DNA of 64,000 nt from Rebecca billardiae RCC1528 (taxonomy: Eukaryota > Protista > Haptophyta), in the NCBI GenBank assembly GCA_965240325.2, contig OZ251242.1, positions 1,240,001 to 1,304,000 on the forward strand, written 5' to 3'. Within the stretch, counting starts at the first letter, position 1; each line of letters opens with the position of its first letter. Positions 3,621-64,000 of the stretch are shown here, piece after piece. The position numbers and the translations under genes are program-made. The notes beneath the pieces were generated by a model. That model was not told the origin of the DNA and did not search any database. It saw only the letters and a list, made by a program, of their open reading frames with translations.

Positions 3621-5163
3621 GCTGAGGGACCCTGGCGAGGCTTACGCCGGTCGCCAGTGAAAACCTCAGCCGCGCAGCGAGATCATACGGAGTTGACTGC
3701 GAGATCGCGCTTTCGAGGCGGCGGGCCGGCGGCGGCGGGCGGGAGCGCGCGCCGGCGCTCTCGCGCGCGCTCGCTGCCCGCAGCGCGCGCGACAGGTCGT
3801 CGCGAGCGCGTGCACACCGGCGCTAGGGTAAATGTCACCTGCGCCCGCCGCTGGCTCGCGCCTGCGCGCTCTCCTCCGCCGGCTGCGGCCCTTGCGAGCG
3901 CTCGCTGTGTCCCGCGCCGGTTCCAAGGAGTCGCGGAAGCATGGTTGCGCGGCCAGCGAAGTGCGGCGTTTGCGGCTTCGCGCGCGCGGGCGCGACGCAG
4001 CGAATGGCTCGCGTGAGCTGACCACCCAGTACCGCTCGCCGCGTGCGACACGTTCCGACCGTCTGCCCCGCGCTCGACGACGAGGAGCGCTGCTCGGACA
4101 CCGTGCTTGGTAGACCGGGGTCGGCGCTCGGCAGCCGCGCGTCGTCGCGCAGAAGAGGCCGCGCGTGGCCACCGCAGCTGCAGTGAAATGTGGCCTAGAT
4201 CCAAATCGTGTCATGAGTTGCGGAAGAACGCGTGCCTCGCCTCAGCGGTCACTGTTGCCCGTGCATGGCGCGCGGCACGCAAGTTGTCTTCACAGAAAGT
4301 GTCCCGAGATCACGCGCCGCCACCGATCGTAGCGGCGTGAGCCGTTGCGCGGAAGAGCTGCGCTCAAGAGCCTCGTGCATGTGTCCTCCGCGCGCTACCA
4401 GAGCCACTCCATCGAGTGCTTTAAGTCGCCTACCGATGGAGTACGATTGGTTCTAAGTTCAAGGCCACTGCCAACAGCACGAGCAGATGTGTGGCCTGGA
4501 GCTCATATCGAGTCGCTCGATCTTGAGTTCGGCGTGATCGCTGAGGCGAGGCACGCGTTCTTCCGCAACTCATGACACGATTTGGATCTAGGCCACATTT
4601 CACTGCAGCTGCGGCGGCCACGCGCGGCCTCTTCTGCGCGACGACGCGCGGCTGCCGAGCGCCGACCCGTCTACCAAGCACGGTGTCCGAGCAGCGCTCC
4701 TCGTCGTCGAGCGCGGGGCAGACGGTCGGAACGTGTCGCACGCGGCGAGCGGTACTGGGTGGTCAGCTCACGCGAGCCATTCGCTGCGTCGCGCCCGCGC
4801 GCGCGAAGCCGCAAACGCCGCACTTCGCTGGCCGCGCAACCATGCTTCCGCGACTCCTTGGAACCGGCGCGGGACACAGCGAGCGCTCGCAAGGGCCGCA
4901 GCCGGCGGAGGAGAGCGCGCAGGCGCGAGCCAGCGGCGGGCGCAGGTGACATTTACCCTAGCGCCGGTGTGCACGCGCTCGCGACGACCTGTCGCGCGCG
5001 CTGCGGGCAGCGAGCGCGCGCGAGAGCGCCGGCGCGCGCTCCCGCCCGCCGCCGCCGGCCCGCCGCCTCGAAAGCGCGATCTCGCAGTCAACTCCGTATG
5101 ATCTCGCTGCGCGGCTGAGGTTTTCACTGGCGACCGGCGTAAGCCTCGCCAGGGTCCCTCAGC
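3621..5163. mobile_element. Foldback element with ~630-bp inverted arms nested in the right arm of the outer element
   Basis: 3621-~4250 is the near-perfect reverse complement of ~4535-5163, with a ~285-bp spacer; empty site visible at 1883-1889. Confidence 0.85.
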
Positions 5164-6122
5164 GGTCCTCTCCGTTATGAGAATGGCACGATGGCTGCGC
5201 CGCCGCCGCCGCTGCGGGGGGGTGGCGGTAGGCCGGGCGTGATTGCTCGTGCGCGCAACGCTGACGCGCCTTCGCCGCCATTCCTCCGCGCCATTCTCGC
5301 CAGCTTGGCCGGCGCGGGTGCCGGCCAGGTGCTTGGCAGTGCGGTCGGGGGCTCCGCCCGCGGCCGCGCGCCGGAGCGAGTGACGGTCCTCTCCGTGCCC
5401 ACGGCCTGCACGCGGCACGAGCCGATATGCCGCAACGGTTGGCGCCCGAGGGCCCACCAAGGGATCGCGTGCACTCTGCCAGGCGGAACCCAGGCCAACC
5501 CACGACGCGGGGCTTTGGACCCCGAGTCCACGGGTGTTTGGCCCCCGGGCTCGCGTCATCCGTAGCCTGCGCCGCCGCGGTGGCCGATCACGTTCCCGTG
5601 ACCGGTTTCAGCATTCTCGGGGCCCCGCTTATACGGCTGTTAAGACTCTGAGCAGAGCGGCGGTGATGAGCATGCAGCACAGTACGCTGTGCGATAGCGC
5701 AGAGCCAGCAGGGGCTTATTGGTCAGCAGAGCCATCATAATCAAGGGCCGCCCTGCTCAGGGTTGACACTGCGGCCACACTGGCCACTGGCCACTGCCAC
5801 TGGGCCAGTGCGGCAGTGGGCCGCGCTCGGCGGATCGTGACGAACCCGACTACCCGTGCGGCACTTCTGACTTCAAGACTATAGCTTATCACTTGGCAAG
5901 AGTAGACAGTACTCAGTAGTCGTCATCGCGACGTTAGAGAGTCTTATAGAGTCGAGACACTGCGGCAGCCCGCGCAGCATGCATATCCCTGCATGGATGC
6001 ATGAGACTGCCACCAGTGGGTCCTAGTCAATTGGCTGACGTCCGCTGACGACGTCATGACTGATGACGTCCACGGCAACGTGCGCCGCGCGCAGCGTCCG
6101 GCGCGCTCAGCAGTCCGAGCGG

Positions 6123-42123: not shown

Positions 42124-45100
42124 ATGGGCGTGCCCGCGCTCTTCAAGTGGCTCCGCCGCCGCTTCCCGCGCGCGATCACGGACGCCGTGGAGGAGGAGGC
42201 GTCGGCGTGCGAGCGTGACCCGGGCGCGTTCGACTGGAGCGGCCCCAACCCGCTGGGGTGCGAGGTGGACTGCCTGTACCTGGACATGAACGGCGTGCTG
42301 CACGCGTGCACGCACCCGCCCGACCGCCCCGCGCCGCCCTCGCTCCCCGCCATGCTCGACGAGATCTGCGCGTACGTCGACAGGCTGTGCGCGCTCGCGC
42401 GGCCGCGCGCGCTGCTCGTGCTCGCGGTCGACGGCGTCGCGCCGCGCGCGAAGATGAACCAGCAGCGCGCGCGGCGGTTCATGGCGGCGCGCGAGGCGGC
42501 GGTGAGCGACCGCGCGCGCCACGCCGCCGCCGACGAGTGGCGCGCGCGCGGCTTCGACCCGAGCGCGCACGCGGCCGGCGGCGGCGCCGCGCCGCCCGCC
42601 GCCGACGCGGACGCCGCCGACGCCGCCGACGCCGACGCGGCCGAGTCGGCGTCGGGCATGCGGGGCGGCGTGTTCGACCACACGTGCATCACCCCCGGCA
42701 CGGCCTTCATGGCCGCCGCCTCCGCGCGGCTGCACGCCCACGTCCTCGAGCGCCTCGCCGCCCACCCCGCGTGGGCGTCGCTTGCTGTCGTCTTCTCCGA
42801 CGCGGCCGAGCCGGGCGAGGGCGAGCACAAGATCCAGGCGCTGGTGAGGGCGGCGCGCGCGTGCGGGGCGTACGGGCCGCGGCTGACGCACGCCGTGTAC
42901 GGGCTCGACGCCGACCTGCTGCTGCTCGGCCTGTGCCTGCACGAGCCCCGCTGGCTGATCCTCCGCGAGACTGTGGAAAGTGCGCAGCCGGCCGGGGCGG
43001 GCTCGAGCGTGGCCGGGGGCGGGGCGCGGGGCAGGGGCGCGGCGCGCGGGCCTGTGGCGCGGTGCCCGCTGTGCAGGCGCGAGGGGCACGCCGCCGCGTC
43101 GTGCGAGCTCGCGCTCCTCGCCGCCGCGCCCGGCGCCACGCGCGCCGCCGCCGCGCCGATGCCGCTGATAGCGCACCGGCCGTTCACGTGGGTAAATCTG
43201 GGTGTGCTGCGCGAGTACTTGGCGCACCTGCTCGGGCCCGGCGGGTGCGCGCTGCCGCCGCCGCCGGCGGCGGCGGCTGCGGCGGGCGCGCAGCAGCAGC
43301 CCGGGCGCGCGCGCGCGGCCGAGGGCGGGCGTGGGCGGGGCCCCGCGGGCGCCGCTCCTGCGCTGCCCGCCGCCGAGGCGCCGCCGCCGCGCGGCGCGCC
43401 CCCGAGCCGCGCCGACCCCTCGCCGCCGCCGAGGCGCCATCTGGAGCCGGCGAGATTCGATCTCGAGATCGCGATCGACGACCTGGTGCTGCTCTCCTTC
43501 CTCGCCGGGAACGACTTCTTGCCGCACCTGCCGGGGCTCGAGGTGCACGCGGGCGCTATGGACGCGCTGCTGGGCGCGTACACGAGTGCGCGCGCGCGCG
43601 CGCCGGCGGGTCTCGCGCCGCTCGTCCGGCGCGGCGCGGTGCAGCGCGCGCCGCTGCTCTGCGTGCTGCGCGCGCTCGCGGAGGCGGAGGAGCGCGCGCA
43701 CGCGCGCGCGAGGGCGCGCGCGCTGCGCGCGGACGAGGCGCGGAGGCAGCGCAGGCGCGCGAGGCCGGTGGGCGGCGCGAGGCACACCGCCAGTGCACTC
43801 CCAGCGTGCGGCGATGGCGCTGCCGGCAGCTTGGAGGCGGAGGCGGAGGCGGCGGAGGCGGAGGGTGGCTCGGCCGCTGCGTTTGAGGCGCTGGTGAGGG
43901 CGCACACGGCCGCACTGCTCGCTGCGGAGGGGGCGGAGGCGGAGGAGGAGGAGGGCGGCGGCGGCGCCGCCGCCGCTGCAGCGCCGGCGGCGGCGGCAAG
44001 CGCGCCCGCCGCCGCGGCCCCCGCCCCGCCGCTCGCCGCCACCGCCGCCCTGGACTACCGCGCGTGCTGGTACGCGGAGCGGCTGGGCGGCGCGTTCGCA
44101 CGCACGGCGGGCGCGGTGCGCGGCCTCTGCCGCGACTACCTGCGCGGCCTGCAGTGGGTGGCGACCTACTACTGGAGAGGCTGCGGCGCGTGGCGCTTCG
44201 GCTTTGAGCACCACTACGCGCCTTTCGCCTCCGACCTGGTCGCCGCCCTCGAGGCGCTGGACGATGCCGCGTTCGGCGCGCTGCTGGCGCCCACCGCCGC
44301 GGAGCGCGCGCCGCCGCTGCGCCCGCTGCGGCAGCTGATGGCGGGTGCGCGCCGCGCGCCGCCGCCCAGCGGCTGCCCTGCCCTGCCGCAGCCGGAGCGT
44401 GCGGCCGCGAGCGCCCGCCGCTTCGCCGTGCGCGCGCCCAGCCCCCCGCCGCCCCTCGGCAAGAGCCTCCCCGCCCCTGCGCGCGCCCTGCGCCCTCCGC
44501 GCGCGCGCTCGCTCACCCTAACCCCGAGCCCTAACCCTCCGCGCGTTCGCTCTCCGCAGTGCTGCCCCCGGCGAGCGCGCACTGCGTGCCGCCGCCGTAC
44601 CGCCCGCTGATGCTGGACGCCGCGTCGCCGCTGGCGCGCTTCTACCCGCGCGCGTTCAAGCTCGACCTGCGCGGGTGCACCGAGGCGTGGCAGGGGGTGG
44701 CGCTGCTCCCCTTCATCCAGCTCGACGCGCTGGAGGCCGCGCTCGACACACTCGACGCCTCCGCGCCGCGCCGGCCGCCTGACGGCCCCGGAGCACCCCG
44801 GCGCGAGCGCGGCGCGCTCAGCGCAGCCGAGCGCGCGCGCGACCAGCCGGCGCCTGCGCGGCTGTACGCGCGCGCGCAGAGCGAGCTCGGCGGGCGGATC
44901 CGCGCGGCGTGCGCCGCGGGCGCGGCGGGCGCCCGGCTGCGCTGCGACGCCGGCGTGCCCGTCGCCGGCCGCGTCTGGAACGGGCGCGCCGCGCACCCGC
45001 CCGCGCGCGCGGGTGCGCCTGCCGCGGCGCGCCCGTCCTCAGCCGTGCTCGTGGCGGATCTGCAGGTGGACGCACCGGCGGCGGACGCGCTGCGCTTCGG

Positions 45101-46624: not shown

Positions 46625-47055
46625 GCGGCCATCTGGGAGCGCTCGCCGCACCCGACACGACTGTGTCTGTGACAGTGTCCCGGACCGTCTGTGAGTCGGG
46701 GCGCCGCGCCAGCCTGCGACTCTCAACTGCAGCGTGCCGACGTGTCGCGTAGAATTGGCGTGGCGCGGCCGCCTCGCGCCACGCCGGCTGCGGGCAGTGG
46801 GCCTGATGACGACCAGGTCCGCATGCCGACAAGGCCCGGTTGAGGGCAGCCAGTGCGCGCGCTTCTGCGTGTTGCTGACCAATACAGACCATCAGAATGT
46901 CACACTCATGAACAGTCTCACTCACAGGCGCGCGCATTGATTTGCGAAAAAATGGCCGAGGAGAAAGCCCGAGCACCGAAAATCGGCGGCGCGCGTCTTC
47001 TCGCGTCCGCTTCTCGCGTCGGCCGGCGCCTTCCGCCCGCCTCGCCGCCGCCGCC

Positions 47056-49056
47056 ATGGACCCCACGCCGCTGCTCGACCCGACGGCGCACGTGGAGGAG
47101 GGCGTGCCGACGGGCCCTGGCGCCGCCGCGATGGGCGTGCAGCTGCGCGTGCGCGGCGTGAGCCACTCGGTCGCCGTGCGCGGCGCGCGCGCGCGCAAGC
47201 CGATTCTGAGCGGCATCGACGCGCTCTTCAGTCCGGGCAGCCTCACCGCGCTGATGGGCGCGTCCGGCGCGGGCAAGACGACGCTGCTCACGCTGCTGCG
47301 CACGGGCACGCCCACCGCCGGCGAGATCCTCGCCAACGGCCGGCCGTACACCAAGCTCGCGCGCAAGCTGATCGTGACGGTGCCGCAGGACGACGTGCTG
47401 CTGCCTGGGCTGAGCGCGCACGAGATGCTCTCGTACGCGGCGGAGCTGCGGCTGCCCGCGAGCGTGGGCTCGGCGGGCCGCGCCGCGCGCGTGCGCGCCG
47501 TGCTCGCGCAGCTGCACCTCGGCGACGAGTGCGCGCACACGCGCATCGGCTCTGTGGAGGAGCGAGGGCTGTCGGGCGGGCAGCGCAAGCGCGTCTCCAT
47601 CGGCCTCGAGCTGCTCACCGACCCGCCGGTGCTGCTGCTCGACGAGCCGACGTCGGGGCTGGACGCGAAGATGGCGCGCGACGTCGTCGCCATCCTGCGC
47701 GCGCTCTCCTCCGAGGGCCGCACCGTCATCGCCACCATCCACCAGCCGTCCGCGCGCGTGTTCGGAGCGTTCGACCGACTGCTGCTGCTCAGCGCGGGCG
47801 GCGTCGCGTACGCGGGCCGCGTGGAGGGCGCGGAGGTGTACTTTAGCGCGCAGGGGTTCCCCACGCCGGAGCACGAGAACCCGGCGGACTACTACCTCCA
47901 GCTGCTGCAGGACCCCGAGGAGGCGGGCGGGCGCGACCTGCTCGAGGCGTGGGCCGAGTGGCGCGGCGGGCGCGGCGCGGCGCGCGCCGCGGCATCGGAG
48001 GGCGCGGCCGCGGACGTGCCCGAAGCGGACGAGGAGGCGGCGGACGCGCGCCCGCCGCCGCACCTCGCACACGCCGCGTCGTCGTTCGGCGGCGAGCTCC
48101 TGCCGCTCGACGGCAGCGCGCAGTACGCCGTCTCGCGCGCCGCGCAGACCTGGGTGCTGCTGCGCCGCCGGCTGTACGACGCCGCCAAGGACCGCACCAA
48201 GCTCGGTCGCTCGCTCGCGCTCCGCCTTACGCTCGGCGTGCTCGTCGGCGTGATCTGGCTGGGCTCGGGGCGCGACGCGTCGTACACGTCGATCTTCCCG
48301 ACGACGGGCGCGCTCTTCCTCGTCGTGAACAACTCGGTGATGGACACGCTCTTCGAGACGGTGCTGCAGTTCCCGCTGCAGCGCGCGCTGCTGCACCGCG
48401 AGTACGTGAACGGTACGTACGCGCTCGGCGCGCACTACGCGGCGCTGCAGCTGGCAAACCTCGTCTTCTGCTCGCTCTCCGCCGCGCTGCTCGGCGCGCC
48501 GGTGTACCTGCTCGTCGGGCTGGACCTCTCGCCGCCGCGCGTGGGCGCGTTCGTCGGGCTGCTCGTGCTGATGGCGCTCATCGGCGCGTGCCTCGGCGTG
48601 ATCGTCGGCGCGACGACCGCGGACATCGACTCGGCGCGCGGCGCCATCATGCCGACGCTCGTGCCCCTTCTCATCTTCTCGGGCTACCTGATCCCGCTCC
48701 GGAAGATCCCGGCGTACTTCCGCTGGATCTACTACGGCTCGTTCTTCCAGTACGGCTTCGGCGCGCTGCAGCTCAACGAGCTCGCCGCGCGTAACTTCAC
48801 CGCCGACTGCCCCGCCGAGCTGGCGGAGGAGGCGGCGGCGGCGCTCATCCACCGCGCGCTGCCAGACCTGCCGCTGCCGCCGCTGCCCAACGCGACGTGC
48901 ACCGGGCAGGACTACCTCGAGTCGGTGCAGCTGTGGCCGCCGCCGTACGGCGGGCTGAAGGGGTACTTCGCCATCCTCGGCGCGTACCTGCTGCTCTTCC
49001 TGCTGCTCGCGTACCACGTGCTCGCCTCGCGCGTCAAGCAGCAGGCGCGCGCGTGA
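47056..49056 (+). CDS. ABCG (White-type) half-size ABC transporter
   Basis: Walker A GASGAGKT, LSGGQRKRVSIG, LLLDEPTSGLD, TIHQPS, ENPADY, C-terminal TM domain. Confidence 0.95.
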   Translation: MDPTPLLDPTAHVEEGVPTGPGAAAMGVQLRVRGVSHSVAVRGARARKPILSGIDALFSPGSLTALMGASGAGKTTLLTLLRTGTPTAGEILANGRPYTKLARKLIVTVPQDDVLLPGLSAHEMLSYAAELRLPASVGSAGRAARVRAVLAQLHLGDECAHTRIGSVEERGLSGGQRKRVSIGLELLTDPPVLLLDEPTSGLDAKMARDVVAILRALSSEGRTVIATIHQPSARVFGAFDRLLLLSAGGVAYAGRVEGAEVYFSAQGFPTPEHENPADYYLQLLQDPEEAGGRDLLEAWAEWRGGRGAARAAASEGAAADVPEADEEAADARPPPHLAHAASSFGGELLPLDGSAQYAVSRAAQTWVLLRRRLYDAAKDRTKLGRSLALRLTLGVLVGVIWLGSGRDASYTSIFPTTGALFLVVNNSVMDTLFETVLQFPLQRALLHREYVNGTYALGAHYAALQLANLVFCSLSAALLGAPVYLLVGLDLSPPRVGAFVGLLVLMALIGACLGVIVGATTADIDSARGAIMPTLVPLLIFSGYLIPLRKIPAYFRWIYYGSFFQYGFGALQLNELAARNFTADCPAELAEEAAAALIHRALPDLPLPPLPNATCTGQDYLESVQLWPPPYGGLKGYFAILGAYLLLFLLLAYHVLASRVKQQARA

Positions 49057-49547
49057 GACCCCATCACCATGGAGGTGACGTCCTGACAGGCCGGACCAGT
49101 CATCAATTATTGGCGCAAGGGCACCGCCATATTCATCAGGAACGGTGCGCTCAAGACTCGCAATTGTAGTCGAATGCGCTCAACTTTTCGAATCGGATGC
49201 CCACGAAGCACGCAGTTTGTGGGTCAGGAGCACACGCGCGCGTCGCAAGTTCAGGGTTCGGACCGTGCAACGGCGCTTTTCTGTGGTTGGCTGTTGAGGG
49301 TTCGTCTACATGGATATCTCTGGTTTCAGGTTGAGCGCTTTTAACGAGGAGAGGCGATCGACCAATGACGTGCCCGTACTCAGCTGAGTTTTGGTGCGAT
49401 GTATTGCCGAGACCGACCAAATCATGTGCGGTTGTCGTCAAGTCGTTGCGCTTTGGGGCGACGAGTTTCTGACCCGTCTTGCCCTGTGCTCGGCACCGCC
49501 CGAGCGACGGCCCTTGGCCGAGTGACCATCTCAAACCGCGCACGCTC

Positions 49548-51206
49548 ATGCCCGTGATCCAGCCGCTCGAGAAGCATGGGGGCGCTGGCGAAGGCGCCTC
49601 GGCCCACGGCGAGGAGACCAACGCGAACAATGGCGGCAGCGTCGGCGGCGGCTCGCGCCGCGGCTCGGCGCGTATGCACTACACGCTCGGCAGGTCGGCG
49701 GTGGTGCTCGCGTGGCCGATGCGCCCGTTCGCGAACATGCTCTGCGCGCTCACGCTCACCCTTGTCATCCTCTTCGCCCTCTTCGTCGGCCACGCCCCCG
49801 CCGGCGACCACGAGCAGAACTACCTGATGTTCTCGCACGTGTCGATCATGATCTTTGTCGGCTTCGGCTTCCTCATGACGTTCCTCCGCCGGTACTCGAT
49901 GGCGGCGATCGGGCTCAACTTCATCGCGGTACGCGCGGCGTCGTGTGACTCACGCCAGTCAGCCCTCCCCCCCCCTCCCCCCCCCGCGCGCACGCGGCCT
50001 TGGGCTCACGGCGCGCACCCGTCACCGCCGCGCGCGCGCCCCCCCGCCTGCCTTCCGCCTGCCTTCCTTGCCTCCTGCTCCCTTCAGTCGGTGCTCGTGA
50101 TGCTCGAGGCGATCCTCATCGTGGGCGCGCTGGCGAGCGCGGAGCACGCCGACCTGCGGCGCGACCTGCAGTTCATCAAGCTCGACGTGGCGATGCTCGT
50201 GCAGGGGCTCTTCGCCGCCGCGGCGGGGATGATCTCGTTTGGCGCGGTGCTGGGCAAGGCGAGCCCGACGCAGGTGCTGCTGCTGCTCGCGCTCGAGGTG
50301 CCGCTGTACGCGCTCAACGCGGTGCTGTGCTTCGAGGGCGTGTTCGTGCCGATGGGCGCGATCGACGCGGGCGGCGCGATCGTGATCCACACGATGGGCG
50401 CGTACTTCGGCCTCGCCGCCTCGCTGCGCATGTTCCGCGACCGCGACGAGCTCGGCGCGAGCCACGCCAAGAACGCCGCGTCTTACGCGTCCAACGTGAG
50501 CAGCATGGTGGGCACCATCTTCCTGTGGATCCTGTGGCCCTCGTTCAACGGGATCTTCACGGGCGAGGCGAGGACCGTCGCCATCGTCAACACAGTCCTC
50601 TCCATCTCGGGCGCCACGCTCGCCACCTTCGCGCTCTCCGCGCGCGTGTTTGGCGACAAGCTAGACATGGTGCTGGTGCAGAACGCGACGCTGGCGGGCG
50701 GCGTCGCGATGGGCGCGGTGCCGCACCTGCCGCTCTCGCCGGGGGTGGCGCTGGCGATCGGCTGCGCCGCGGGCGCGCTCTCGTGCACCGGCTTCTCCCT
50801 CGTCGGCCCGTGGCTCGAGGCGCGCATCGGGCTCAAGGACACGTGCGGCGTGCACGCGCTGCACGGGATGCCCGGCGTTCTCGGCTCGCTCGTCGGAGCG
50901 GTCGCGCTCGCCGCGATGCCGCAGCACGCGGCCGCGCCGGGCGCGGCGGGCGCGGAGGTGCTCGCGCTGCTCGTCACGCTCGCCATCGCCATCCTCGGCG
51001 GGCTCGCGTGCGGCGAGCTCGTCTCCCGCGTCGACGCCGTCCCCGACGCGCACGACCGTTACGACCTCGCGTTCGAGGACGCGGCGCTCATCCAGTGCGA
51101 CCGCGAGCCGGACGAGGAGCTCACGAGGGCGAGGGCGGTGCACGACACGAAGCCGCCCGCGCACCCGGCCCCACCGCTCGCGGCGAGCGCGGTGGCGGGC
51201 GGATGA
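49548..51206 (+). CDS. Rh-type (Rhesus) ammonium/CO2 channel; intron at 49929-50087
   Basis: HVSIMIFVGFGFLMTFLRRY, ISFGAVLGK, IHTMGAYFGL, GTIFLWILWPSFN, QNATLAGGVAMG, DTCGVHALHGMPG. Confidence 0.93.
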   Translation: MPVIQPLEKHGGAGEGASAHGEETNANNGGSVGGGSRRGSARMHYTLGRSAVVLAWPMRPFANMLCALTLTLVILFALFVGHAPAGDHEQNYLMFSHVSIMIFVGFGFLMTFLRRYSMAAIGLNFIAVRAASCDSRQSALPPPPPPARTRPWAHGAHPSPPRARPPACLPPAFLASCSLQSVLVMLEAILIVGALASAEHADLRRDLQFIKLDVAMLVQGLFAAAAGMISFGAVLGKASPTQVLLLLALEVPLYALNAVLCFEGVFVPMGAIDAGGAIVIHTMGAYFGLAASLRMFRDRDELGASHAKNAASYASNVSSMVGTIFLWILWPSFNGIFTGEARTVAIVNTVLSISGATLATFALSARVFGDKLDMVLVQNATLAGGVAMGAVPHLPLSPGVALAIGCAAGALSCTGFSLVGPWLEARIGLKDTCGVHALHGMPGVLGSLVGAVALAAMPQHAAAPGAAGAEVLALLVTLAIAILGGLACGELVSRVDAVPDAHDRYDLAFEDAALIQCDREPDEELTRARAVHDTKPPAHPAPPLAASAVAGG

Positions 51207-58923: not shown

Positions 58924-61900
58924 TCACAGATACAGCCCGCCCTTCTTGCCGCTCTGCTCCCACGCCTCGCGCACCGCCTTCCTGCCCGCCTCGCTGAGGC
59001 TGAAGTCATTAAGACTGCGGGAGGCGCGCAGTCGGGGACGGGTGTCGGGCGCGCGGCGGGAGCGTGAGCAAGGGCAGAGCGCGCGCGTGCGATGCCTGCC
59101 CGCCCGAGCACGCGCGAGCGCGCCGCCTGCGCCGCTGCCACAGCGCCCCGCGGCCGCGCCGCCCGCCCGCCGCCGCGCGCGCGCCCGAGCCCGCCGACGG
59201 GCCGCGCGCGCGGCGCACGCTCGGACATCACCGCGCGAGGGCGCGCGGCGCGCGCGCGCGCGGCGCGCCGCGCTCGACGTGCGTCCGCAGCACATGCCCC
59301 AGCTGGCACCCGCTCACCCACCCCCGCCCCTCCACGCCACCCGCGCGCCCGCACCCGCGCGCGTGCACACGTACCTGAGGTCAAGCGTCTGCAGGGAGCG
59401 GCTGTGACGCACGGCGTCCGCGATGGCGGTGGCGCCAGCGTCGCTGATCCGGTTGAAGCTGCGGGAGGCGCGGCGGGAGGGGCGGGCGCGCGGCGGGGTT
59501 GTGAGTGGGTGTCGAGCGCGCACGTGCGATGCGTGCCCGCCCGTGCACGCGCGAGCGCGCCGCACGCGCCGCTGCCACAGCGCCCCGCGGCCGCGCCGCC
59601 CGCCCGCCGCCGCGCGCGCGCCCGAGCCCGCCGACGGGCCGCGCGCGCGGCGCACGCTCGGACATCACCGCGCGAGGGCGCGCGGCGCGCGCGCGCGCGG
59701 CGCGCCGCGCTCGACGTGCGTCCGCAGGGCATGCCCCGGCTGGCGCCCGCCCACCCATCCCCGCCCCTCCGCGCCACCCCCGCGCCCGCCCCCGCGCGCG
59801 TGCACACGTACCTGAGGTAGAGCTTCTGCAGGGAGCGGCTGTGGCGCACTGCTTCCGCGATGGCGGTGGCGCCAGCGGTGCCGATCTCGTTGCCACTGCG
59901 GGAGGCGCGGCGGGAGGGGCGGGCGCGCGGCGGGGGCGTGAGTGGGTGTCGAGCGCGCGCGCGCGCAGCGTGCCCGCCCGAGCACGCGCGAGCGCGCCGC
60001 ACGCGCCGCTGCCACAGCGCCCCGCGGCCGCGCCGCCCGCCCGCCGCCGCGTGCGCGCCCGAGCCCGCCGACGGGCCGCGCGCGCGGCGCACGCTCGGAC
60101 ATCACCGCGCGAGGGCGCGCGGCGCGCGCGCGCGCGGCGCGCCGCGCTCGACGTGCGTCCGCAGCGCATGCCCCGGCTGGCGCCCACCCACCCACCCCCG
60201 CCCCTCCGCGCCACCCCCGCCCCCGCACCCGCGCGCGTGCACACGTACTGGAGGTTGAGCTCCTGCAGGGAGCGGCTGTGGCGCACGGCGTCCGCGATGG
60301 CAGTGGCGCCAGCGGCGCCGATCTCGTTGGCACTGCGGGAGGCGCGGCGGGAGGGGCGGGCGCGCGGCGCGGGCGTGAGTGGGTGTCGAGCGCGCGCGCG
60401 CGCAGCGTGCCCGCCCGAGCACGCGCGAGCGCGCCGCACGCGCCACTGCCACAGCGCCCCGCGGCCGCGCCGCCCGCCCGCCGCCGCGTGCGCGCCCGAG
60501 CCCGCCGACGGGCCGCGCGCGCGGCGCACGCTCGGACATCACCGCGCGAGGGCGCGCGGCGCGCGCGCGCGCGGCGCGCCGCGCTCGACGTGCGTCCGCA
60601 GCGCATGCCCCGGCTGGCACCCGCTCACCCACCCCCGCCCCTCCACGCCACCCCCGCGCCCGCCCCCGCGCGTGCACACGTACTAGAGGTCAAGCGACTG
60701 CAGGGAGCGGCTGTGACGCACGGCGTCCGCGATGGCGGTGGCGCCAGCGGCGCCGATCCCGTTGGCACTGCGGGAGGCGCGGCGGGAGGGGCGGGCGCGC
60801 GGCTGGGGTGTGAGTGGGTGTCGAGCGCGCGCGCGCGATGCGTGCCCGCCCGAGCACGCGCGAGCGCGCCGCACGCGCCGCTGCCACAGCGCTCCACGGC
60901 CGCGCCGCCCGCCCGCCGCCGCGCGCGCGCCCGAGCCCGCCGACGGGCCGCGCGCGCGGCGCACGCTCGGACATCACCGCGCGAGGGCGCGCGGCGCGCG
61001 CGCGCGCGGCGCGCCGCGCTCGACGTGCGTCCGCAGCAAATGCCCCGGCTGGCGCCCGCTCACCCACCCCCGCCCCTCCGCGCCACCCCCGCGCCCGCCC
61101 CCGCGCGCGTGCACACGTACTGGAGGCCAAGCGTCTGCAGGGAGCGGCTGTGGCGCACGGCGTCCGCGATGGCGGTGGCGCCAGCGGCGCCGATCTTGTT
61201 CCAACTGTGGAAGGCGCGGCGGGAGGGGCGGGCGCGCGGCGGGGGCGTGAGTGGGTGTCGGGCGCGCGCGTGCGATGCGTGCCCACCCGAGCATGCGCGA
61301 GCGCGCCGCACGCGCCGCTGCCACAGCGCCCCGCGGCCGCGCCGCCCGCCCGCCGCCGCGCGCGCGCCCGAGCCCGCCGACGCGGCCGTGCGCGCGGCGC
61401 ACGCTCGGACATCACCGCGCGAGGGCGCGCGGCGCGCGCGCGCGCGGCGCGCCGCGCTCGACGTGCGTCCACAGCGCATACCCCGGCTGGCGCCCACCCA
61501 CCCACCCCCGCCCCTCCGCGCCACCCCCGCGCCCGCCCCCGCGCGCGTGCACACGTACCCGAGCTCAAGCGTCTGCAGGGAGCGGCTGTGGCGCACTGCT
61601 TCCGCGATGGCGGTGGCGCCAGCGGCGCCGATCTTGTTCCAACTGTGGAAGGCGCGGCGGGAGGGGCGGGCGCGCGGCGGGGGCGTGGGTGGGTGTCGGG
61701 CGCGCGCGTGCGATGCGTGCCCGCCCGAGCATGCGCGAGCGCGCCGCACGCGCCGCTGCCACAGCGCCCCGCGGCCGCGCCGCCCGCCCGCCGCCGCGCG
61801 CGCGCCCGAGCCCGCCGACGCGGCCGCGCGCGCGGCGCACGCTCGGACATCACCGCGCGAGGGCGCGCGGCGCGCGCGCGCGCGGCGCGCCGCGCTCGAC

Positions 61901-64000
61901 GTGCGTCCGCAGCGCATACCCCGGCTGGCACCCGCTCACCCACCCCCGCCCCTCCGCACCACCCCCGCCCCCGCACCCGCGCGCGTGCACACGTACCTGA
62001 GGTCAAGCGTCTGCAGGGAGCGGCTGTGGCGCACGGCGTCCGCGATGGCAGTGGCGCCAGCGGCGCCGATCTCGTTGGCACTGCGGGAGGCGCGGCGGGA
62101 GGGGCGGGCGCGCGGCTGGGGTGTGAGTGGGTGTCGAGCGCGCGCGCGCGATGCGTGCCCGCCCGAGCATGCGCGAGCGCGCCGCACGCGCCGCTGCCAC
62201 AGCGCTCCACGGCCGCGCCGCCCGCCCGCCGCCGCGTGCGCGCCCGAGCCCGCCGACGGGCCGCGCGCGCGGCGCACGCTCGGACATCACCGCGCGAGGG
62301 CGCGCGGCGCGCGCGCGCGCGGCGCGCCGCGCTCGACGTGCGTCCGCAGCGCATGCCCCGGCTGGCGCCCACCCACCCACCCCCGCCCCTCCGCGCCACC
62401 CCCGCCCCCGCACCCGCGCGCGTGCACACGTACTGGAGGTTGAGCTCCTGCAGGGAGCGGCTGTGGCGCACGGCGTCCGCGATGGCAGTGGCGCCAGCGG
62501 CGCCGATCTCGTTGCCACTGCGGGAGGCGCGGCGGGAGGGGCGGGCGCGCGGCGCGGGCGTGAGTGGGTGCCGAGCGCGCGCGCGCGCAGCGTGCCCGCC
62601 CGAGCACGCGCGAGCGCGCCGCACGCGCCACTGCCACAGCGCCCCGCGGCCGCGCCGCCCGCCCGCCGCCGCGCGCGCGCCCGAGCCCGCCGACGGGCCG
62701 CGCGCGCGGCGCACGCTCGGACATCACCGCGCGAGGGCGCGCGGCGCGCGCGCGCGCGGCGCGCCGCGCTCGACGTGCGTCCGCAGGGCATGCCCCAGCT
62801 GGCACCCGCTCACCCACCCCCGCCCCTCCGCGCCACCCGCGCGCCCGCCCCCGCGCGCGTGCACACGTACCCGAGGTTGAGCTTCTGCAGGGAGCGGCTG
62901 TGGCGCACTGCTTCCGCGATGGCGGTGGCGCCAGCGTCGCCGATCTTGTTCCAACTGTGGAAGGCGCGGCGGGAGGGGCGGGCGCGCGGCGGGGGCGTGA
63001 GTGGGTGTCGAGCGCGCGCGCGCGATGCGTGCCCGCCCGTGCACGCGCGAGCGCGCCGCACGCGCCGCTGCCACAGCGCCCCGCGGCCGCGCCGCCCGCC
63101 CGCCGCCGCGCGCGCGCCCGAGCCCGCCGACGCGGCCGCGCGCGCGGCGCACGCTCGGACATCACCGCGCGAGGGCGCGCGGCGCGCGCGCGCGCGGCGC
63201 GCCGCGCTCGACGTGCGTCCGCAGCGCATGCCCCGGCTGGCGCCCACCCACCCACCCCCGCCCCTCCGCGCCACCCCCGCCCCCGCACCCGCGCGCGTGC
63301 ACACGTACTGGAGGTTGAGCTCCTGCAGGGAGCGGCTGTGGCGCACGGCGTCCGCGATGGCAGTGGCGCCAGCGTCGCCGATCTCGTTGCCACTGCGGGA
63401 GGCGCGGCGGGAGGGGCGGGCGCGCGGCGCGGGCGTGAGTGGGTGCCGAGCGCGCGCGCGCGCAGCGTGCCCGCCCGAGCACGCGCGAGCGCGCCGCACG
63501 CGCCGCTGCCACAGCGCCCCGCGGCCGCGCCGCCCGCCCGCCGCAGCGCGCGCGCCCGAGCCCGCCGCAGCAGCCGCAGCGGCGTCGCCACGCGCGCGCG
63601 CGCACACCCGAGGTCGAAGACCACCGGGTCTGGGTTGGCCTTGAGCTGCAGCAGGCGCACGACGACGGCCTTGTGCGCTACCCACGCGCAGCCCCACGCC
63701 CACGCGAGTGCCGCCAGCGCAGGCGCGCTCTGCGCCTCGCGCCACGCGGACGGCCAGCGCAGCGCGGCCACCGCCAGCGCGGCCTCCGCGCAGCCGAGCA
63801 GGATGTGGGTGGGCGCCGTGCGCGCGAGCCACCCCGCCGAGCTCAGGTCGACCATGCCGACGGCGGCGTACACGATGCCCGCCTCCCACGCCGCGCTCCG
63901 CCAGGCCGCCAGCTGCCCTCCGCGCTCGAGTGCACCCATGACCTTGAGGTGGCCGCTGTAGCGCACGGAGGCGACCAGCGCGAGCGCCGCCGCAGCGAGC
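58924..64000 (-). CDS. Membrane-anchored RI/NLRC3-type LRR protein, 5' end outside the window. Exons: >64000-63608; ten 84-bp LRR exons (63309-63392, 62871-62954, 62434-62517, 61997-62080, 61559-61642, 61121-61204, 60684-60767, 60249-60332, 59812-59895, 59375-59458); terminal cap exon 59014-58924
   Basis: Each exon is flanked by ..(g/a)cag| and |gtacgt and encodes xNxIG[AD]AGATAIA[DE]AVRHSRSLQxLxL; the spliced ORF is open to TGA at 58924; the upstream exon has several hydrophobic helices and ends in VVFDL. Confidence 0.9.
59015..63565. repeat. Tandem array of ~437-bp intron+exon units (about 10.4 copies)
   Basis: Near-identical introns of 351-360 bp alternate with 84-bp exons. Confidence 0.95.

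Follow-up and report, generated by a model that had tools for sequence, protein, structure and literature searches.

What protein would carry a string of nearly identical leucine-rich repeats (LRRs), one to an exon, and what sets those repeats apart at just a handful of residues? The locus that raises this question lies at the end of a 64,000-nucleotide (nt) stretch of the genome of the haptophyte Rebecca billardiae RCC1528 (GenBank assembly GCA_965240325.2, contig OZ251242.1, positions 1,240,001 to 1,304,000 of the forward strand), which we call the window, and an earlier note made from the letters alone had described it as a cassette array encoding a candidate diversifying receptor like the variable lymphocyte receptors (VLRs). 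We found the array to form the tail of a gene with a first exon that extends past the window end and encodes a predicted membrane domain of the XK/Xkr family, to which the caspase-activated lipid scramblases of animals belong; the earlier note had missed this feature. Germline diversifying selection combined with concerted evolution on a recombining one-LRR-per-exon array is well supported by what we observed, and in the most likely working model this germline-diversified surface would be cytosolic and would regulate or localize the scramblase-like domain, a functional half of the model that we infer.

At the DNA level the tandem array spans window positions 59014-63567 (437-bp unit, 10.4 copies, 94% matches by Tandem Repeats Finder), each unit consisting of an 84-nt exon and an intron of ~353 nt. 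Read on the minus strand, window 58924-63608 contains ten LRR exons, each exactly 84 nt long and encoding one 28-residue LRR of the ribonuclease-inhibitor (RI)/NLR type; the earlier note had listed ten such exons, and coordinates and splice sites could be assigned to all of them. Every 84-nt exon has a (C/A)CAG acceptor in front of it and the donor GTACGTGTGCACG behind it. Introns 1-9, which separate the repeat exons, are 351-354 nt long and ~96% identical to one another, in agreement with the near-identical introns of ~353 bp described before. All introns share the same phase, with the codon cut after its second base, and the split codon specifies the residue between the 'LxL' and the 'xN' of the repeat. 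After splicing, each unit reads SLQxLxLxxNxIGxAGATAIAxAVRH (28 codons in 10/10), and the core AGATAIA(D/E)AVRHSRSLQ, which the earlier note had already called essentially invariant, is invariant in all ten units. The spliced product shows eleven strands, from VVFDL-G-GNE through TLDL-S-LND, and the eleven strand readings given previously were all correct. The predicted product is 803 residues long, with the array making up the 3' two-thirds of one minus-strand gene, and its solenoid comprises 12 RI/NLR-type LRR strands, ten of them being complete 28-residue repeats.

In the direction of transcription (all features on the minus strand), the gene enters the window with the 3' end of exon 0 at 63608-64000, recognized by its open frame and translation, followed by intron 0 at 63393-63607 (215 nt, donor GTGTGCG), the 3' part of which is homologous to the repeat introns. 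The LRR exons, placed by repeat alignment and splice sites, follow at 63309-63392 (exon 1, 84 nt, GNEIGDAGATAIADAVRHSRSLQELNL), 62871-62954 (exon 2, WNKIGDAGATAIAEAVRHSRSLQKLNL), 62434-62517 (exon 3, GNEIGAAGATAIADAVRHSRSLQELNL), 61997-62080 (exon 4, ANEIGAAGATAIADAVRHSRSLQTLDL), 61559-61642 (exon 5, WNKIGAAGATAIAEAVRHSRSLQTLEL), 61121-61204 (exon 6, WNKIGAAGATAIADAVRHSRSLQTLGL), 60684-60767 (exon 7, ANGIGAAGATAIADAVRHSRSLQSLDL), 60249-60332 (exon 8, ANEIGAAGATAIADAVRHSRSLQELNL), 59812-59895 (exon 9, GNEIGTAGATAIAEAVRHSRSLQKLYL) and 59375-59458 (exon 10, FNRISDAGATAIADAVRHSRSLQTLDL). Intron 10, at 59015-59374 (360 nt), proved the most divergent of the repeat introns on comparison, and the spliced model ends with a 91-nt terminal exon at 58924-59014 that encodes (S)LNDFSLSEAGRKAVREAWEQSGKKGGLYL and then a TGA stop. 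This terminal exon forms a C-terminal capping half-repeat that is kept in all six paralogues described below.

Only the spliced model yields a protein, because the unspliced array carries stops in all three frames (10, 6 and 4); these stops, and a 437-bp period that is not a multiple of 3, ruled out unspliced read-through. Splice-site pairs were intact in 50 of 50 units across all loci, the units of the sister loci having the same 84-nt, one-phase design, and the spliced coding sequence (CDS) was intact and stop-free as modelled in six of six paralogues with both the XK exon and LRR exons (553-803 residues). The GC content at codon positions 1, 2 and 3 was 0.72, 0.56 and 0.90, in exon 0 and the LRR exons alike, which speaks for the coding frame. 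We also considered a structure or RNA borne by the introns, and rejected it: there was no Rfam match at E-values up to 0.1, and the intron fold was no better than that of shuffled sequences (z = -1.2).

The RI/NLR-type pattern, a 28-residue period in which an alpha-helix-forming segment comes after LxxLxLxxN(x)L, is present in 10/10 units. Single LRR exons scored 14.5-21.2 bits against Pfam LRR_6 (cut-off 23.4); one exon spans only profile positions 12-24, and the remainder of the motif sits on the preceding exon, so that each exon gives a half-match. Profile matches of the repeat in the PDB were to radial spoke protein 15 (RSP15), NOD2 and an RI-like protein.

To describe where the repeats differ we used 40 non-redundant units and the register L1 x2 x3 L4 x5 L6 x7 x8 N9 x10 L11. 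Five codons, x3, x5, x7, x8 and x10, were hypervariable, each showing 6-13 different residues (2.2-3.4 bits), compared with 0.5 bits or less at 21 of the 23 other codons. These five are the variable x positions that the earlier note had picked out, and by the canonical LRR register, from which their placement is taken, they are the solvent-exposed positions of the concave face and ascending loop. Many framework codons were invariant even synonymously (e.g., GCT, GGC and GCC, each in 40/40), and the mean column identity of the repeats in the window array was 88%. The combination of residues at the five positions was unique in 39 of the 40 units.

The excess of exon over intron change lies in these five codons, a pattern that recalls fast-evolving immune-type receptors. 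Mean pairwise divergence in the window array was 11.3% for exons vs 5.2% for introns (4.2% without the last, atypical intron). Nucleotide divergence reached 0.42-0.47 over the 15 hypervariable bases, compared with 0.05 for the framework and, for introns, 0.045 within the array and 0.058 between arrays. By the Nei-Gojobori method (NG86), the framework codons had a nonsynonymous rate (dN) of 0.035 and a synonymous rate (dS) of 0.10, a ratio of 0.35. For the hypervariable codons family-wide, dN was 0.99 and dS 0.094, giving a dN/dS of 10.6 (3.7 in the window array only), and at their first and second positions, where the p-distance of 0.61 is near saturation against a neutral distance of 0.06, the Jukes-Cantor (JC) ratio to introns was 21 (bootstrap 95% confidence interval 17-26), all these ratios being upper estimates since bias toward G and C at third codon positions (GC3) depresses dS and gene conversion depresses intron divergence. 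The earlier note had supposed that the coding hot-spots diverge more than the adjacent introns and that selection drives this, and both the comparison with introns and dN/dS at the variable codons bear it out.

The rate excess is confined to the amino-acid-changing positions. Third positions of the hypervariable codons hardly change: the last base of x3 and x10 is G in 40/40 units, and glycine at x3 or x10 is always GGG, whereas glycine elsewhere is GGC in 93 of 93 codons. A regional or exon-edge mutation hot-spot can be excluded because the variable codons are interleaved, codon by codon, with invariant ones (x L x L x x N x I), and their third positions are nearly frozen. The age of the diversity bears on how the ratios are to be read. 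If it is old and has been shielded from homogenization, as it may be, then dN/dS and the intron ratio overstate the rate excess, because both yardsticks are depressed; the frozen third positions favor the view that the diversity at the five residues is young and stems from rapid positive selection. On both views selection must favor differences at exactly these five positions, since conversion tracts cannot step around individual interleaved bases.

The frame of exon 0 is open for 492 codons upstream of the first junction, with the ATG at G000:C25:1305085, 1085 nt past the window end. Its 492-residue product is predicted to start with an N-terminal region, to pass the membrane several times in an XK/Xkr-family domain, and to close with the first LRR strand (VVFDL-G), the last XK helix ending HKAVVVRLLQLKANPDP and running directly into that strand. 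Against Pfam at E-values up to 1, exon 0 matched XK-related (PF09815) alone (25.3 bits vs a cut-off of 24.8, E = 9e-6), and no Roc-COR, NB-ARC or NACHT domain was found. A profile of 12 relatives (the exon, its paralogues and a few public relatives) matched rat Xkr9 (7p14) in the PDB with an E-value of 6.4e-5, in an alignment that pairs the motifs tD..aD (D..xD) and lE..lE..PQ..LQ.Y (E..LE..PQ..LQ.Y). An AlphaFold2 (AF2) model of residues 101-492 was of moderate quality (predicted local distance difference test, pLDDT, 64.5; predicted TM-score, pTM, 0.59), and with this model Foldseek returned XKR8, XKR8, XKR4, XKR9 and XKR9 at ranks 1-5 (probability 1.00, TMt 0.48-0.67), the probability falling to 0.18 at rank 6. 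Feature matches from a language model (Atlas) were likewise XK clusters. These profile and structure-model comparisons show the N-terminal exon to encode a predicted XK/Xkr-family domain.

A homologous-protein search with the XK exon gave no match, and an exhaustive HMMER search of 1.84 billion representative proteins found just four relatives, 35-40% identical and 74-442 residues long. None of these four outside relatives has an LRR tail, and their contigs carry an XK-only gene followed by a glutaredoxin gene; we thus found no outside orthologue of the XK-LRR fusion. Distant XK-like genes, 30-37% identical, are also present in the R. billardiae genome on C21 (at least 8 loci), C23, C27, C8 and C15. 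Since the fetched flanks of four of these loci (C21 twice, C27 and C15) had no RI-type LRR motif, the fusion is not general among the XK-like genes of this genome. In the two distant genes whose whole sequence was read, the XK core is preceded by a signal peptide, an N-terminal region that looks extracellular, and one extra helix. A degenerate fragment of the XK exon, with an internal deletion and TGA/TAG stops, lies at G000:C5:3494020-3494640 (65-69% amino-acid identity), and Logan contigs of 64-68% GC from ERR14847148, ERR14847149 and ERR14847152 gave the same two-piece match pattern as this C5 fragment, which suggests that the source of those contigs is this organism or a close relative of it.

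Searching the whole assembly with the DNA of two units, or with a profile made from the exon alignment, gave one and the same closed set, 51 LRR exons spread over nine loci, so the sister loci that the earlier note had expected do exist, as paralogues with 3-10 units. Six of the loci have an XK exon (87-92% identical in amino acids), namely the window locus on C25 and five on C31 (at 903, 911, 936, 946 and 1131 kb), with 10, 4, 5, 3, 7 and 4 repeat exons, respectively. The XK exons of these paralogues differ by 5.1% in DNA (dS 0.062), a distance similar to that of the repeat introns between loci (5.8%) and slightly above that of introns within an array (4.5%).

There were also signs of exchange among units. 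In the window array the four-gamete test failed for 186 of 351 pairs of informative non-hypervariable sites, recombination must have taken place at least 9 times over 437 bp (minimum number of events, Rm), and neighboring sites were more compatible than distant ones (pairwise homoplasy index, PHI, p<0.001). We take the units to be recombination mosaics because of these three results, which fit continuing unequal exchange or gene conversion. The intron tree was star-like, and its grouping by locus was only partial, with 14 label changes where 7 is the minimum and shuffling gave 23 on average. The recombining array under diversifying selection proposed by the earlier note is therefore supported as a germline process, with mosaic units and dN far above dS. 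Its cassette array holds as regards one-repeat cassettes; these are not a free cassette store, but rather the C-terminal tail of an 803-residue protein.

The family data also bear on whether the locus could be without function, either as a decaying or never-expressed family or because assembly of the 437-bp repeat has given a spurious number and order of units. Such a reading can draw on a dN/dS of 0.7-0.8 over the whole XK exon, on the cheapness of stop-free frames at the GC content of this locus, and on one sister array that contains a gap of 200 N and has an identical copy 11.2 kb away. We consider it very improbable, as the framework is under purifying selection (dN 0.035 vs dS 0.10, as above), the pattern at single-codon resolution occurs in one frame only and could not be produced by neutral decay, and the 50 intact splice-site pairs, the GC3 periodicity and the six intact spliced CDSs with their conserved terminal exon all stand against it.

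The gapped array just mentioned belongs to the loci that have LRR exons and no XK exon. Two of these are on C19 (G000:C19:1147265-1150000 and 1158468-1161697), where the arrays are identical and 11.2 kb apart; this pair may have arisen by segmental duplication or may be duplicated only in the assembly. A one-unit fragment lies at G000:C24:408329-408851. The C19 and C24 copies are 5'-truncated at a breakpoint that they share, AGCTATCTATCTGAAGGCAGATCC, within the final 30 nt of exon 0, and their upstream flanks differ and are AT-richer, as if a fragment had been copied between contigs.

Orphan arrays of this kind invite the idea that diversity is made within the organism's life, by VLR-like gene conversion from the C19 and C24 arrays or by regulated exon skipping. 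The 5'-truncated, donor-like arrays do exist, and because the 11 introns are of one phase and the repeat exons all of 84 nt, the products of exon skipping would stay in frame; alternative splicing of one-LRR exons is also reported for brown-algal ROCO genes (PMC11378527). We nevertheless judge within-life diversification improbable, since the germline genes are complete and need no assembly, since VLR-type caps and a non-coding spacer are absent, and since in-frame compatibility follows automatically from the repeat architecture.

For similar reasons the description as VLR-like found no support. Lamprey and hagfish VLRs are assembled somatically from an incomplete germline gene, are built of 24-residue LRRV modules with cysteine-rich caps, and are extracellular. 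The window protein resembles them in having an LRR solenoid with an invariant framework, a hypervariable concave face and modular cassettes. It departs from them in each structural feature examined: all six germline genes are complete, the repeats are of the 28-residue RI type, cysteines are absent from the solenoid, and LRRNT/LRRCT caps are missing, the terminal exon being without a Cys cap.

The side of the membrane on which the solenoid lies matters for what it could bind. In the solved structures of Xkr8 and Xkr9 both termini are cytosolic, and RI-type LRRs are a cytosolic class. Because the repeats of the window protein follow the C-terminus of the XK-family domain, which is cytosolic in Xkr, and because they are RI-type, the solenoid is probably cytosolic too. 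The distant XK-like paralogues have a basic stretch after their extra N-terminal helix, which fits the same orientation. An exposed receptor for the prey or pathogen recognition that the earlier note had considered is, on the same two grounds, unlikely.

Taken as a whole, the explanation we favor, and hold to be reasonably probable, is a young XK-LRR family with homogenized units and a diversified cytosolic sensor tail on an XK domain. One large 5' exon encodes the predicted XK/Xkr membrane domain, with the LRR solenoid placed directly after its last helix, and the family, made up of six intact XK-LRR paralogues (3-10 repeats, ~5% apart in DNA) together with orphan arrays that are 5'-truncated, is a young one. 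Whole units, in both exon core and intron, would be kept ~95% identical within and between loci by recent duplication and by unequal exchange or gene conversion that still goes on, while selection for amino-acid change would separate the five concave-face residues of each repeat, so that almost every repeat, and each paralogue, shows a different surface. The tail would then be a cytosolic, germline-diversified, ligand-binding sensor, a topology suggested by homology to Xkr8/9, and it would control the XK domain, occupying the place of the regulatory C-terminal tail of animal Xkr proteins. Such a sensor-effector pair might be used against viruses or other intracellular non-self.

Several points weigh against this explanation, in addition to the depressed yardsticks described above. 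Open frames mean little at 74-86% GC, the alternative frames of the CDS holding only 0-10 stops; the splice junctions, and expression itself, are what we infer from the DNA; and unit number and order rest on the assembly. The XK exon is weakly constrained among paralogues (G000:C25:1303610-1305085 and the five C31 paralogues), with a dN/dS of ~0.5-0.55 in the helical parts and ~1.1 in the N-terminal 113 residues and the central loop, which also has indels among paralogues, and some XK-LRR copies may be decaying. Finally, diversification between repeats can arise from fitting one asymmetric partner, with no arms race.

That last point can be built into an account of its own, in which the family is an ordinary young repeat protein, its array produced by recent tandem duplication and its repeats each tuned once afterwards to one fixed, asymmetric endogenous partner (e.g., a cytoskeletal or membrane protein); the LRR tail would then be an adaptor and not a sensor of non-self, and no arms race would continue. 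The units are only ~4-6% apart at neutral sites, so the expansion is recent; RI-type LRRs are often housekeeping adaptors, the best PDB profile match here being the radial spoke protein; and the neighbors of the gene in the window are housekeeping genes (XRN, ABCG and ammonium transporter). We give this account some weight and think it rather unlikely, since six paralogues ~5% apart in the XK exon have entirely different hypervariable residues and 3-10 repeats, which amounts to a repertoire. The near-saturation of the hypervariable sites (p 0.61) despite a neutral distance of 0.06 also speaks against a single partner, and orphan arrays and recombination mosaics fit a high-turnover family.

The preferred explanation, with its diversified cytosolic tail on an XK domain, leaves room for different uses, and the protein of the working model may act as an immune or cell-death sensor-effector. 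In the most specific form of this idea, XK-LRR proteins would form a hitherto unknown class, in microalgae, of single-chain innate immune sensor-executioners whose germline-diversified cytosolic LRR surface senses viral or parasite proteins and releases the XK domain to scramble lipids, a proposal that we put forward tentatively and that has, in our estimate, a modest chance of being correct. If it were true, phosphatidylserine (PS) exposure or cell suicide would serve as an abortive-infection response, with a pathogen-sensing switch in place of the caspase switch of Xkr8.

Comparison with described systems helps to place the family. Animal Xkr proteins have short tails and are activated by caspase cleavage. 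The window protein is like Xkr8, Xkr9, Xkr4 and CED-8 in its predicted membrane fold and hallmark motifs and in carrying an element on the C-terminus (regulatory and cytosolic in Xkr), and unlike them in that its tail is a 310-residue hypervariable LRR solenoid and that two extra N-terminal hydrophobic segments are present; identity to the animal proteins is only 13-16%, and the domain is scramblase-like by homology. Animal NLR and RI genes encode cytosolic proteins with 28/29-residue RI-type LRRs in a modular match of exons to repeats, one to two repeats per 171-174-nt exon. The modular match of exons to repeats, an RI-type LRR at the C-terminus of a protein of the sensor-effector type (putative at the window locus) and, probably, a cytosolic location are common to these genes and the window locus (NOD2 was among the PDB matches), whereas the window locus has one repeat per exon, no NACHT domain that we could find, and a membrane domain as its putative effector.

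Closer parallels in the mode of evolution come from fungi and brown algae. The NLR-like genes of Podospora (nwd, het-d and het-e) and many other fungal NLRs have WD, ANK or TPR repeats, never LRRs, and always a NOD domain (Dyrka et al. 2014, PMC4986451). They resemble the window array in having repeats no less than 85% identical to one another, positive selection at a few hypervariable positions per repeat on the interaction surface, a varying number of repeats, and concerted evolution by exchange within and between paralogues. They differ in that their repeats are not split by introns and accompany a NACHT/NB-ARC switch, which was not found at the window locus, and in that repeat-induced point mutation (RIP) feeds fungal hypermutation, for which we saw no counterpart at the window locus. 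The earlier note had pointed to Ectocarpus, and the parallel is apt: ROCO genes of this brown alga have an LRR-Roc-COR structure with 24-residue LRRs, one per 72-nt exon (Zambounis et al. 2012, PMC3341825). The ROCO genes of Ectocarpus and its NB-ARC-TPR genes share with the window family one repeat per symmetric exon, so that units can be added, lost or swapped in frame, as well as positive selection on the concave face, clustered loci, gene birth and death, and orphan LRR exons, and in both cases the host is an alga without described adaptive immunity. In contrast to the ROCO genes, the window locus has 28-residue RI/NLR repeats on 84-nt exons, its partner domain is a predicted XK-family membrane domain, with no Roc-COR GTPase found, its introns are ~95% identical, and its signal of selection, limited to five codons, is far stronger; expressed-sequence-tag (EST) support exists for the Ectocarpus genes, whereas the window locus is known from its sequence. 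We found no description in the literature of an XK-related domain fused to LRRs, and we conclude that a known evolutionary regime, of conserved repeats with hypervariable sites, is operating here on an undescribed domain architecture.

Some further observations concern the surroundings of the arrays. The first ~70 nt of each repeat intron (window 59459-63308, sense strand) are rich in G-runs, e.g., GGGGCGGGGGTGGGTGAGCGGG, a canonical G-quadruplex motif, and the repeat introns have alternating (GC)n tracts of 15-40 nt in mid-intron and a C-rich 3' end. An older array at G000:C31:701899-703853 (L037 ~3900-5850, minus strand), of ~70% identity, has 4-5 one-per-exon LRRs and introns of 327-342 nt, and an open reading frame with RCC1 repeats (L037 6294-7817, minus strand) lies directly upstream of it. 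In the window, the neighboring genes on the plus strand encode an XRN 5'-3' exonuclease (42124-44610), an ABCG-type transporter (46942-49056) and an ammonium transporter (49479-51206), and no cluster of immune-type genes was found inside the window.

Very little is known about how unicellular marine algae recognize viruses or parasites, and candidate receptors are rare. Few molecular signatures of a recognition surface under diversification are as clean as that of the XK-LRR family of R. billardiae, and the surface is joined to a predicted domain whose relatives in animals give dying cells their 'eat-me' lipid signal. The near-identical introns also make the locus a natural system in which concerted evolution can be set against selection at nucleotide resolution. 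If the link between surface and domain holds, the family would provide a directly testable sensor-effector pair for algal cell-death immunity, and it would be an independent, LRR-based case of the strategy of conserved repeats with hypervariable sites, described so far from fungal NLRs and brown-algal ROCO proteins.

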